From Piromyces finnis finn (taxonomy: Eukaryota > Fungi > Neocallimastigomycota), in NCBI GenBank assembly GCA_002104945.1, contig MCFH01000001.1:558001-622000 (forward strand): 64,000 nucleotides of DNA. Reading direction: 5' to 3'. Of the stretch, positions 13,259 to 17,210 are shown in pieces. The position numbers were made by a program, and so were the translations under genes. The notes under the pieces are model-generated. The model did not search any database and was not told where the DNA came from. It saw nothing but the letters and a program-made list of their open reading frames with translations. The stretch's first letter is position 1. Each line of letters begins with the position of its first letter.

Positions 13259-16200
13259 TTATATATATCCAGTCAATTTGGATTTTTTATGAGCAATTCT
13301 CCATTCTTTTTTATTTATCCAGTTATATCGTTTATTATCATAAATTGCCGTAGATATCCATGTTGATTTCCTTTGTGGGAATGATTTCACAACAATTTCA
13401 CGGTTAGGTATTAATATTGACAAGTCCTTTTGTATTCTTTCTTTTAATCCATTGAACTAAATTAATCCATGTGGATATATAAAGAGTTTAGAAGATATTT
13501 TTGAAAAAAAAAAGTTATAATATTAATAATAGACAAACAAACAAACAAACAAACAAACAAACAAACAAACAAACAAACAAATAAATAAATAAATAAATAA
13601 ATAAATAAATAAATAAATAAATAAATAAATAAATAAATAAATAAATAAATAAATAAATAAATAAATAAATAAATAAATAAATAAATAAATAAATAAATAA
13701 ATAAATAAATAAATAAATAAATAAATAAATAAATAAATAAATAAATAAATAAATAAATAAATAAATAAATAAATAAATAAATAAATAAATAAATAAATAA
13801 ATAAATAAATAAATAAATAAATAAATAAATAAATAAATAAATAAATAAATAAATAAATAAATAAAAACCATTAATATTTACATAACTAGAGCCACCAGTT
13901 AATATAATATTAGTATAAAGTTCATCATGATGAATTGAATCACATTTATTAATCACTTTTTCGATCAAACAAGGTAAACTCTTGATTTGATTTCGACCAA
14001 TTAAATTAGGCTGGAAAAGAATTTCTGGACATTGAATACGTTCAATATCCATGATAATAAGTTGACCATTAGGGAGTTCTACGTATTGTCCTATAACATC
14101 TGATCTTTCTTCGATAAAGTTTTGTGCTACATAACAGAATTTTTCTTTAATTTTTCTAGCCATTTGTAATCCATGTCCCGGTTTTTCAGCATTAAATTTA
14201 TATTTATACCTGTTTTCTAAAAGTTCTACTAGATATTCTAATATAGCATTACCAGCTATATCATGAGAATATTGGGCACTAGAAATTATTTGTCCTCTAC
14301 ATATTGGTACAATTTTTGTAGTGGAATCACCAATATCAATAATAATTCCTGTACTTATAGGATCGGGTAATGTTAATTCTGCTGAATTTAAAAAGGCTAC
14401 TGATGATACATTGAATCGATTAAATAATAGAGAGAGAATTTTTTCTTTGAAATTATAATCCATACAGAGTTCGTTTAAAATAATCTGTACTCCTTTTGTT
14501 CGCTCTTCAACTTTTTCTGGACATACATATTTATCTACCTTTAATTGAATCATTATGTATTTCAAGAATTCTTCCATATAGTCACTTGTAATGGCCATTT
14601 TAGCATTTTTATCTATAAGAGGATATAAAGTTGATCTTGAAGAATATTTTAGAGCTTTAAGTCCGAAATTTATTGGTTTCTTTGTTTCACTATCATTTAA
14701 TACACCTAATAATGAATGAATTAACTATAGACAATTTTTTTTTAGTTTAATAGTAATTTTATTTTATATATATATTTATTTTGAAATTTCATTACAAATT
14801 CTGGCTGTGTCTTTCTTATAAATCCAACTTTACATGTATATGATCCAATATCTATTACAATCTAAATATATATTTAATTTTCATTGAGTTTTTCATAATA
14901 ATAAAGTGTAAAACATTAAATGTCAAAATTAAATTATAATGTCTTATATTTTTGATAAAAAATTTTCTATTAACATACAGGATTAATGTCGTAATCTTTA
15001 ATTTTAATATTGGTTATTTTATATCAATATTGATATTTATGTTTAATTATTGTTATTATTATTATTATTGATAATATATATGAATATACAGAAATACTAG
15101 TATTATTATATATCATTATATATATATTACCTGGATATTCTATATTAAAATACATAAAATGTCATTTTATTATTAATTGTTTATAGATTATATAAAATAA
15201 TAATAATAATAATAATAATAATAATAATAATAATAATAATAATAATAATAATAATAATAATAATAATAATAATAATAATAATAATAATAATAATAATAAT
15301 AATAATAATAATAATAATAATAATAATAATAATAATAATAATAATAATAATAATAATAATAATAATAATAATAATAATAATAATAATAATAATAATAATA
15401 ATAATAATAATAATAATAATAATAATAATAATAATAATAATAATAATAATAATAATAATAATAATAATAATAATAATAATAATAATAATAATAATAATAA
15501 TAATAATAATAATAATAATAATAATAATAATAATAATAATAATAATATTAATAATAATAAAATAAATTTAATATTTAAATAAATAAACTACCTAATTTTG
15601 AATATTCTGATGGTGCTTTATTTTATAATATATATTTTATTTTTTTCGAATTTAATTTAATATATAAAAAAAGTAAATAAATGCTATGTTTATACCATAT
15701 TTTCAAAAATATAGAAATTAATGAGATTTACTTATTAATTGTAGTCTATCTTGGATATCTGAACATGTTAGTTAATAAATTTTTTTTTAATTAATATAGA
15801 AATACCATTATTTAATATTTAATTTATAATGTATCAATGAATGGACATTTATTAATTTACCTTTTAATGCCAACTTTTTATTTACTAAAAATTTTGAAAA
15901 AATATTTAAACATATTAATTTTGAATATTTTATATATTTAACAGTTTGTATATTTTATTATATACATACATATTATTTTCGGCTTCAAATCAATTGCTTC
16001 TATTAATAATTAAAAAAAAAAGGAAAATAAAATTATTAATATGCATAACAATATTCTTATTTAATAATATTTTTAAAATGATACAAACTTGCTTCATTGT
16101 TATTAGGAGTAATCTTATCTTGTATTTTCATTTCATGAAAGCTTTGTCTAAAAGAATCCCGATCTTTTATATTTATATTTATATTTATATATAAAAAAAT

Positions 16201-17210
16201 TATTTATTAGTAATTTTTAATTATAGTGTAATGAATAAATTGAATTATCATATATACCTGGCTTGCGTTCAGATAATGCTAAATAGAAAAAGGTTTATTA
16301 TTAATATACATTAACATTATATATATATAACAAAATTTAAATATTTTTTTTTTTTTTTTTTTTTTTTTTTTTTACATTTTGGTAAATTATCTAAATTTTT
16401 TATTAATTAAATATGAATTCACATTAACGTTAGAAAGAGGAAATAAATTAGAGTTTTAATAATTATAGGATTGTATATTTTTGTAATATTATTGATAATG
16501 AATCAATACTTTTTCTAAATGGCATATATTCAGGGTAACTTTCTATTAACAAATAAATGAAACATATTAAAAAGAAAGATTGAAAGGTTAATTTTTTATT
16601 GATTTTATTAATAAAGTAACAATAATAATAAAAATAAAAACATACTTATTTTCCTTCTGCTCATCAGTCCATCTTTTAAAAAAAGAATAAAAATGTTTGT
16701 TGTTATTAAAATAATAATTTAAATAATTTATATAAATATTATTTCATGGTTTTAATTAGGGGATATGTTTTTTTTTTTTTTTTTTTTTTTTTGAAATAAT
16801 ATATATGGAAATTTTTATTGATTTAGTGATAATTACCTTCATTTTTATCTTCATCTTATACCAATTTATACACATATATATTATAATGTTAATTTTTTTT
16901 TAAAATTATATACAATTAATATTTAATATTTAAAAATATATGTATATTTATGACAGTCGAGAATAAAAAATATCAAATTGAATTTATACCATTTACTTTG
17001 TCTTTTTCTTCATTTTTATCTATTGATATATATTTAAAAATTAATAATAATTAATTAGGTTTCACCAGGATATTTACCAATAATTTCATTATAATTAATA
17101 CTTTATATTAAAAAATTAATTTAAAATTTCTAAACATTTTTTTTTATTTAATTTGTACCTTGATTATTATTATCAGGGCTGCCATTATTAACTTTGGAAG
17201 CATTATTCAT
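13259..17210 (-). CDS. Divergent actin-like protein (about 497 aa) with a microexon-encoded N-terminal extension, 16 predicted exons
   Basis: Actin fold motifs: IVIDIGSYTCKVG (14796-14861), GIIIDIGDSTTKIVPI, ARKIKEKFCYVA, ERIQCPEILFQP and ILTGGSSY|FNGLKERIQKDL. The last intron is 13457-13881 and the stop is at 13259. Upstream exons chain in frame back to an ATG at 17210 that follows an in-frame TGA. The actin core is secure; the 5' exon chain is a manual model. Confidence 0.82.
13513..13864. repeat. Compound (AAAC)n(AAAT)n microsatellite inside the last intron of the actin-like gene
   Basis: About 350 bp. It produces the spurious IYLF/VCLF-repeat ORFs in the track. Confidence 0.95.
15196..15546. 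repeat. (AAT)n microsatellite, about 115 units, in an intron of the actin-like gene
   Basis: Uninterrupted AAT run between predicted microexons 15131-15139 and 15592-15615. Confidence 0.95.

Follow-up and report, generated by a model that had tools for sequence, protein, structure and literature searches.

A 64,000-nucleotide (nt) stretch of the genome of the gut fungus Piromyces finnis, called the window hereafter (assembly GCA_002104945.1, contig MCFH01000001.1, positions 558,001 to 622,000 of the forward strand; ~17% guanine plus cytosine (GC) overall), carries an actin-like gene of unusual architecture. We conclude, with a probability of roughly 80%, that this locus is one intact gene with a long ladder of phase 1-1 microexons that are constitutively spliced. 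The gene extends on the minus strand from position 18373 to position 13259 and has 21 exons and 20 introns. Its coding sequence of 1,782 nt starts with the ATG at 18373 and specifies 593 amino acids (aa), and it is the only copy in the 56.46-megabase, 232-contig assembly. The ladder comprises 14 consecutive symmetric exons of 30, 12, 33, 30, 18, 27, 33, 21, 75, 30, 24, 27, 24 and 9 nt (13 of them no longer than 33 nt), with every flanking intron in phase 1, and it is entered from a 64-nt exon and left through a 17-nt exon. These 14 exons supply 393 nt, or 22%, of the coding sequence.

A reading of this DNA from its letters alone (the original prediction) had proposed a ladder of eleven internal exons. 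All eleven are real, as evident by the fact that each is flanked by AG and GT, is a multiple of three, is stop-free in phase 1 with the same translation, and is recovered by spliced alignment. However, the ladder is longer by three exons of 12, 30 and 33 nt at its upstream end. The last of these lies within the segment 17159-17210 that had been taken for exon 1 with an ATG at 17210; this ATG is intronic, because the acceptor AG of what is an internal exon lies at 17192-17193. The ladder does encode part of an N-terminal extension of the actin-like protein, as had been proposed, but the extension is 225 aa rather than ~140 aa long, begins with a conserved domain, and owes 131 of its residues to the ladder.

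The gene model was produced with a purpose-written spliced protein-to-genome aligner, which requires GT/AG introns and tracks phase, applied to positions 13150-18450. Alignment of transcript-derived relatives recovers the ladder coordinates and the upstream exons without use of the exon list from the original prediction. Single exons were used for searches with the window, and natural full-length relatives served as proxies for the whole protein. There are four such relatives of 554-584 aa: P0002 is an annotation from Neocallimastix lanati, and P0003, P0005 and P0006 come from Joint Genome Institute (JGI) contigs. The contigs L001-L004 (1.75-2.0 kilobases) are taken to be transcripts because they hold uninterrupted open reading frames (ORFs) of 554-584 aa. 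All four relatives start with the conserved N-terminal domain, and the window ORF at 18290-18373 corresponds to the first 28 residues of this domain; all except the N. lanati model contain the residues of the last ladder exons, including the EYQ or EYK of the 9-nt exon.

The broader set of relatives' transcripts leads to the same result. The complete conserved ladder is present in P0003, P0005, P0019, P0006, P0020, P0011, P0013, P0014 and transcript L012, and transcript-derived proteins of at least three other gene lineages also carry conserved ladder residues. The cluster of P0002 includes the 565-aa protein P0011, which is carried by five transcript contigs from five samples. These five N. 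lanati contigs match the genome exactly, with exons of 84, 117 and 64 nt before the ladder, 30, 12, 15, 30, 18, 12, 21, 69, 30, 24, 27, 24 and 9 nt within it, and 17, 66, 843 and 186 nt after it. Even the 9-nt exon is matched exactly in six N. lanati transcript contigs, and its EYK or EYQ residues occur in every transcript-derived protein. A metagenome scan with an alignment of the N-terminal domain returned two loci only, one of which is L012. From these observations, the ladder is shown to be constitutively included in relatives' transcripts.

The sequence pattern was also compared with chance expectation. The ladder introns are 85-231 nt long, apart from one of 452 nt; their GC content is ~10%, their donors are of the GTA type and their acceptors are AG. 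Within the 2,578-nt ladder region, which holds 62 AG and 58 GT dinucleotides, exons have 27.5% GC versus 10.3% for introns, and all four genes compared show the same separation (0.26-0.28 versus 0.09-0.13). Stop-free AG...GT candidates of phase 1-1 between 9 and 90 nt number 35, versus 9.9 ± 4.4 in 100 first-order Markov (Markov-1) random sequences, and the longest collinear chain has 15 members, versus 6.2 (range 2-11) in the random set. By itself this pattern is suggestive and not conclusive, because chains of about six arise in random AT-rich DNA as well. The ladder is proven by its conservation, by the relatives' transcripts and by the spliced alignment that was blind to the earlier exon list.

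A possible objection is that the small segments are merely chance open frames and that the true N-terminus lies at the actin fold or close to it. Random sequence of the same composition indeed offers about ten phase 1-1 candidates, and three public annotations, with models of 255-257 aa, start at an internal methionine of the 843-nt main exon. However, relatives' transcripts hold the residues of all conserved ladder exons together with the upstream domain, the N. lanati transcripts agree with their genome exon by exon, exon GC is 2.7 times intron GC, and exon lengths and boundaries are kept in five genomic loci whose introns are full of insertions and deletions. Moreover, one of the short models, from Piromyces sp. 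E2, is shortened by an assembly gap that falls exactly over the ladder (L005:3904-7155). For the relatives, the chance-frame reading is already refuted, and there is almost no prospect that it applies to the window. The outcome that would have refuted the original prediction, a protein that starts near the actin fold or ladder segments that are intronic, is thus contradicted in the relatives.

The original prediction had also called for a comparison of exon lengths and phases in other gut fungi, and these prove to be conserved in a close metagenomic relative (L006), in Anaeromyces robustus (L022) and in both N. lanati paralogs (paralog A, L010; paralog B, L016); the Piromyces sp. E2 locus (L005) was left out of the ladder comparison because of its assembly gap. 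The ladder of L006, with exons of 30, 12, 30, 27, 21, 27, 33, 21, 75, 30, 24, 27, 24 and 9 nt, corresponds one-to-one with that of the window; all of its exons are AG/GT-flanked and open in phase 1, and all length differences are multiples of three. Window and L006 were compared by anchored MAFFT alignment, as short-word blastn was swamped by AT-rich low-complexity matches. Five variable exons align without gaps, whereas nearly every intron is gapped (0-134 gapped columns each) and aligned introns are only ~0.47 identical. The well-conserved ladder exons are the first two (30 and 12 nt) and the last four (24, 27, 24 and 9 nt), and the eight between them are variable. Identity at codon positions 1, 2 and 3 is 0.95, 0.88 and 0.74 in the conserved exons, versus 0.65, 0.61 and 0.52 in the variable exons (37% amino-acid identity).

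The ladder is conserved across three genera. In A. robustus, the same conserved exons are located upstream of the truncated public model. N. lanati has two paralogs, with ladders of 13 and 17 exons, versus the single copy in the genome of the window. The 17 consecutive phase 1-1 exons of paralog B (KAG4105926.1; 27, 12, 18, 24, 18, 27, 12, 21, 27, 18, 21, 66, 30, 24, 27, 24 and 9 nt) match the transcript-derived protein P0020 residue for residue. The exons of the window and their counterparts are collected in Table 1.

Table 1. Exons of the actin-like gene in the window, in order of transcription, with counterparts in related loci
Feature	Coordinates	Strand	Length (nt)	Phase	Description and counterparts
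Exon 1	18290..18373	minus	84		ATG at 18373; begins N-terminal domain; spliced alignment of P0003, P0005, P0002; 85% DNA identity to L006
Exon 2	17725..17841	minus	117	0-0	N-terminal domain; spliced alignment; 87% identity to L006; equal length in L006, L010, L016, L022
Exon 3	17574..17637	minus	64	0 to 1	Ladder entry; spliced alignment; 94% identity to L006
Ladder exon 1	17423..17452	minus	30	1-1	Spliced alignment; in N. lanati transcripts; 30 nt in L006, L010, L022; 27 nt in L016
Ladder exon 2	17293..17304	minus	12	1-1	Encodes (K)LPS; spliced alignment; in transcripts; 100% identical to L006; 12 nt in every genome examined
Ladder exon 3	17159..17191	minus	33	1-1	Acceptor AG 17192-17193; aligned to 30-nt L006:1446-1475
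Ladder exon 4	16990..17019	minus	30	1-1	Low-complexity; AG/GT check and spliced alignment; L006:1646-1672 (27 nt); L010:4534-4563 (30 nt, in transcripts)
Ladder exon 5	16837..16854	minus	18	1-1	Low-complexity; weakest exon of the set; L006:1817-1837 (21 nt); L010:4661-4678 (18 nt, in transcripts)
Ladder exon 6	16646..16672	minus	27	1-1	RRKI/RKI motif common to relatives; L006:1967-1993, equal length, gapless
Ladder exon 7	16510..16542	minus	33	1-1	L006:2091-2123, equal length; 12+21 nt in both Neocallimastix paralogs, split again in phase 1
Ladder exon 8	16258..16278	minus	21	1-1	L006:2409-2429, equal length; both AG/GT-flanked
Ladder exon 9	16089..16163	minus	75	1-1	Sole ladder exon above 33 nt; L006:2504-2578, equal length, gapless, 53% DNA identity; 69 nt in L010, 66 nt in L016
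Ladder exon 10	15970..15999	minus	30	1-1	30 nt in L006, L010, L016, L022
Ladder exon 11	15861..15884	minus	24	1-1	Conserved NKKLALK; 24 nt in every genome; present in all transcripts
Ladder exon 12	15732..15758	minus	27	1-1	Conserved; 27 nt in every genome; present in all transcripts
Ladder exon 13	15592..15615	minus	24	1-1	Conserved; 24 nt in every genome; present in all transcripts
Ladder exon 14	15131..15139	minus	9	1-1	Encodes (E)YP; 9-nt AG/GT-flanked counterpart in L005, L006, L010, L016, L022
Ladder-closing exon	14979..14995	minus	17	1 to 0	Encodes (D)YDINP; 17 nt in all genomes
66-nt exon	14796..14861	minus	66		First strand and first phosphate loop of actin fold; spliced alignment
Main exon	13882..14724	minus	843		Actin-fold core; Pfam Actin match
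Last exon	13259..13456	minus	198		Includes TAA stop at 13259-13261; spliced alignment

The original prediction had further suggested that the ladder is a combinatorial splicing cassette from which any subset of exons could be skipped. With respect to frame this is true, since all ladder exons are symmetric; of the 120 possible joins, however, only 115 remain open and the other five create a TAA codon. In its fullest form, this explanation holds that life stages such as the zoospore and the thallus include different microexon subsets and thereby produce different N-terminal arms. Linker lengths among transcript-derived proteins do range from 56 to ~95 aa, but these differences lie between species or paralogs and are mirrored in the genomes. 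Likewise, the public model KAG4093570.1 omits the 9-nt EYK exon, as would be expected from an aligner unable to place 9 nt. Every transcript-derived protein seen has the complete conserved ladder, and the five N. lanati contigs, which come from as many samples, all contain the same exons. No ladder-exon skipping, down to the 9-nt exon, was seen in the relatives' transcripts examined, whose assembled contigs show dominant isoforms only. The combinatorial proposal is therefore unsupported, and we consider a regulated cassette to be quite improbable.

One variation in exon content was observed. An extra 9-nt, AG/GT-flanked exon (L010:5148-5156) is present in one of the six N. lanati contigs (L012:246-255) and not in the other five, and L012 otherwise has the same exons. 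This insert is accompanied by a frameshift, because a homopolymer reads A8 versus A7 in the genome. The surplus A could be an assembly slip or could mark a frame-breaking inclusion, and thus the insert may be noise or an unproductive form. Use of an alternative acceptor, which was considered as a source of the extra 10 nt in L012, is ruled out by the separate AG/GT-flanked 9-nt exon plus the surplus A.

Several points weigh against our conclusion that the entire ladder is present and constitutively spliced, or against parts of the protein description that accompany it. The low-complexity 18-nt and 30-nt ladder exons, with ~20% GC, are the least certain of the set. Real linkers of relatives score only z = 1.9-4.2 above shuffled versions of matched composition, and the shuffled versions are still placed on two or three of the eight variable exons, such that cross-genus protein similarity in this stretch is weak. 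Minor skipping isoforms would be invisible in assembled contigs. The transcripts are those of relatives and not of the species itself, and from them we infer that the locus in the window is spliced in the same manner. Finally, AlphaFold2 run on a four-sequence alignment gave a predicted local distance difference test (pLDDT) score of 30. Its model hints weakly that the N-terminal domain may be helical, and because of this low score the case for disorder in the linker is made from composition and poor conservation.

How might exons this small be tolerated? Splicing here probably proceeds by intron definition, with each short AT-rich intron recognized as a unit, and therefore exon length would matter little. 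The symmetry of all ladder exons means that the linker may gain, lose, split or resize exons without a break in frame. Such frame-neutral changes would account for the differences between lineages (ladders of 13, 14 or 17 exons, and 33 nt versus 12+21 nt at one site) alongside the constant lengths of the conserved exons. We infer that the ladder is a product of linker evolution and not a regulated generator of diversity.

The uniform phase calls for separate consideration. About half of the codons split by ladder introns are divided as G/AT or G/AA, which fits an exon-final G at codon position 1 in AT-rich coding sequence. By itself, this bias cannot account for 15-18 consecutive introns that share one phase. 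Frame-neutral exon birth within a phase 1 intron is a live possibility, as is intron gain at G/A sites, for which the 33-nt versus 12+21-nt case would be an example. Another way to build such an array is repeated tandem duplication of one phase 1-1 exon-plus-intron unit. The fairly uniform sizes of exons (24-33 nt) and introns (85-165 nt) would agree with this route, as would the established principle that only symmetric exons duplicate without a frameshift. However, a search of the ladder region for direct repeats found poly-T runs only and no duplication units, the conserved exons encode unrelated peptides, and the 33-nt versus 12+21-nt difference looks like intron gain or loss inside an exon. 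An origin by tandem duplication is thus unlikely.

A more far-reaching version of exon birth is that the ladder is a birthplace of coding microexons, in which the array turns over between lineages, young exons are optional, and some are perhaps used in a stage-specific manner. Chance stop-free AG...GT segments are common in the AT-rich ladder DNA, and any of these that is a multiple of three could be exonized harmlessly inside a phase 1 intron of a disordered linker. A young exon of this type would be exemplified by the optional 9-nt exon that one of the six N. lanati transcripts carries. We regard this scenario as doubtful though conceivable; if true, the ladder would be a fungal intracellular counterpart of the micro-exon genes known from schistosomes.

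The encoded protein consists, in order, of an N-terminal domain of ~90 aa, a linker of ~90 aa, a pre-actin segment of ~35 aa and a divergent actin fold. The N-terminal domain is conserved and is encoded by three ordinary exons; searches of Pfam, of PDB sequence profiles (best E = 0.48) and of the ESM Atlas returned no match for it. The linker is rich in K, N, E, D and S, with 72% polar or charged residues across the stretch of eight middle exons, and is poorly conserved. The pre-actin segment, which the ladder encodes together with the linker, is again conserved. Composition and poor conservation suggest that the middle stretch is a flexible linker that joins an N-terminal domain of no matched family to the divergent actin fold.

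Assignment of the fold itself is robust. The main exon matches Pfam Actin (PF00022) with E = 3e-32 and 112 bits (cut-off 27) over profile positions 32-336, and the full-length relatives P0005 and P0002 score 158-166 bits (1e-46 to 1e-48) over positions 4-397 of 410. The actin core is ~370 aa long and lacks large insertions. The main exon is 75-91% identical to gut-fungal relatives, and identity to another actin-family gene of the same genome is only 38%. By-eye reading suggests that the phosphate-loop motifs in the 66-nt and 843-nt exons are altered. The best PDB matches of the main exon are conventional actins (E of about 1e-31), and chains of actin-related proteins (Arps) are absent among the 60 best solved-structure matches, a comparison that covers PDB proteins only; therefore, the protein is not assignable to a named class (Arp1-Arp11) from the PDB comparison. 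A word search with the main exon returned ten proteins, and the strong relatives found (E<1e-100) all belong to gut fungi or to metagenome or transcript contigs that look like gut-fungal sequence.

Public annotation captures this architecture unevenly. The ladder exons are already present in two N. lanati models, KAG4093570.1 (all but the 9-nt exon) and KAG4105926.1. Of the five public models, three are cut to the C-terminal 255-257 aa, namely those of Piromyces sp. E2, A. robustus and N. californiae (P0009/P0021), and the fourth is the one without the 9-nt exon. The upstream part of the A. robustus gene (L022:4678-7606) is present in the genome and is unannotated, and in Piromyces sp. E2 the ladder is covered by a run of N. 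The gene therefore serves as an annotation warning. At the 9-nt exon, KAG4105926.1 reads EYT, whereas the genome (L016:5087-5095) and P0020 read EYK, which suggests that this microexon was placed slightly wrongly in the model.

Some of the introns contain simple repeats. An (ATA) microsatellite of ~125 copies (15192-15565) accounts for the greater part of the 452-nt intron that immediately precedes the 9-nt exon; this expansion is specific to the genome of the window, because the same intron is 141, 274 and 101 nt long in L006, L010 and L016, respectively. The last intron (425 nt, versus 174 nt in L006) contains an (AAAT) microsatellite of ~83 copies (13535-13865). No stop codon interrupts this repeat in the frame of the 843-nt exon, and simple ORF finding therefore gives 378 aa that run through the intron. 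Homopolymers, A on the gene strand, lie at 16344-16373 (30 nt) and 16768-16792 (25 nt) inside two ladder introns. Convergent to the actin-like gene is an intronless 828-aa ORF at 7290-9776 on the plus strand, and synteny is conserved because this ORF has the length and position of a BRAP2/zf-RING/zf-UBP gene in L006.

Fungal genes are usually described with few introns and hardly any microexons. The gene reported here has 20 introns in a 1.8-kilobase coding sequence, 15 of them consecutive in phase 1, and exons as short as 9 and 12 nt are spliced faithfully in at least three genera. It offers a natural test case for how a spliceosome that acts on short, very AT-rich introns recognizes exons far below normal size, and for how disordered linkers change length through frame-neutral exon changes. 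On present evidence, it does not reveal a new mechanism of protein diversity. The original prediction knew of no such description for a fungal actin-like gene. Our literature searches likewise found no paper describing the ladder, and full-text searches found none on microexons in Neocallimastigomycota, but the exons were already present in the public N. lanati models. The architecture is thus well supported and unusual, captured by these models and without a published description that we could find. A 2024 paper states that functional microexons were undescribed in filamentous fungi before its own case (PMC11121469).

The gene differs from conventional actin by its 225-aa N-terminal extension, and its ladder invites comparison with two known systems. 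Runs of symmetric phase 1-1 exons (exon-shuffling class 1-1) in modular and disordered animal proteins also consist of same-phase exons, but these typically code for entire domains or repeats (at least 100 nt) and reside in long introns. By analogy, same phase would make exon insertion, loss and duplication frame-neutral in both cases. Unlike the animal runs, the ladder exons are mostly 9-33 nt, encode no repeat, and belong to a fungal gene with short introns.

The second system, to which the original prediction had likened the ladder, is the micro-exon genes (MEGs) of schistosomes. MEGs make variants by microexon skipping, and microexons dominate their coding sequence; here, microexons account for less than a quarter of the coding sequence, and relatives' transcripts carry the whole ladder with one optional 9-nt exon in a single contig as the sole variation. 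According to a recent preprint, MEG exons are symmetric and 3-81 base pairs long, MEG introns reach 5 kilobases, and MEG products are secreted (bioRxiv 10.1101/2023.06.21.545858). Unlike those introns, the ones described here are short, and the longest holds a 374-nt microsatellite. The product carries an actin fold and has no sequence relationship to MEG products; by hydropathy only, no signal-peptide-like N-terminus was found, as the peptide of exon 1 is acidic and polar (top nine-residue hydropathy mean of 1.0). The likeness therefore holds for form and not for most defining features, four of the five listed being absent from this gene. What the gene shares with MEGs is a tandem series of very short exons, here 9-75 nt and all multiples of three, set between ordinary exons.

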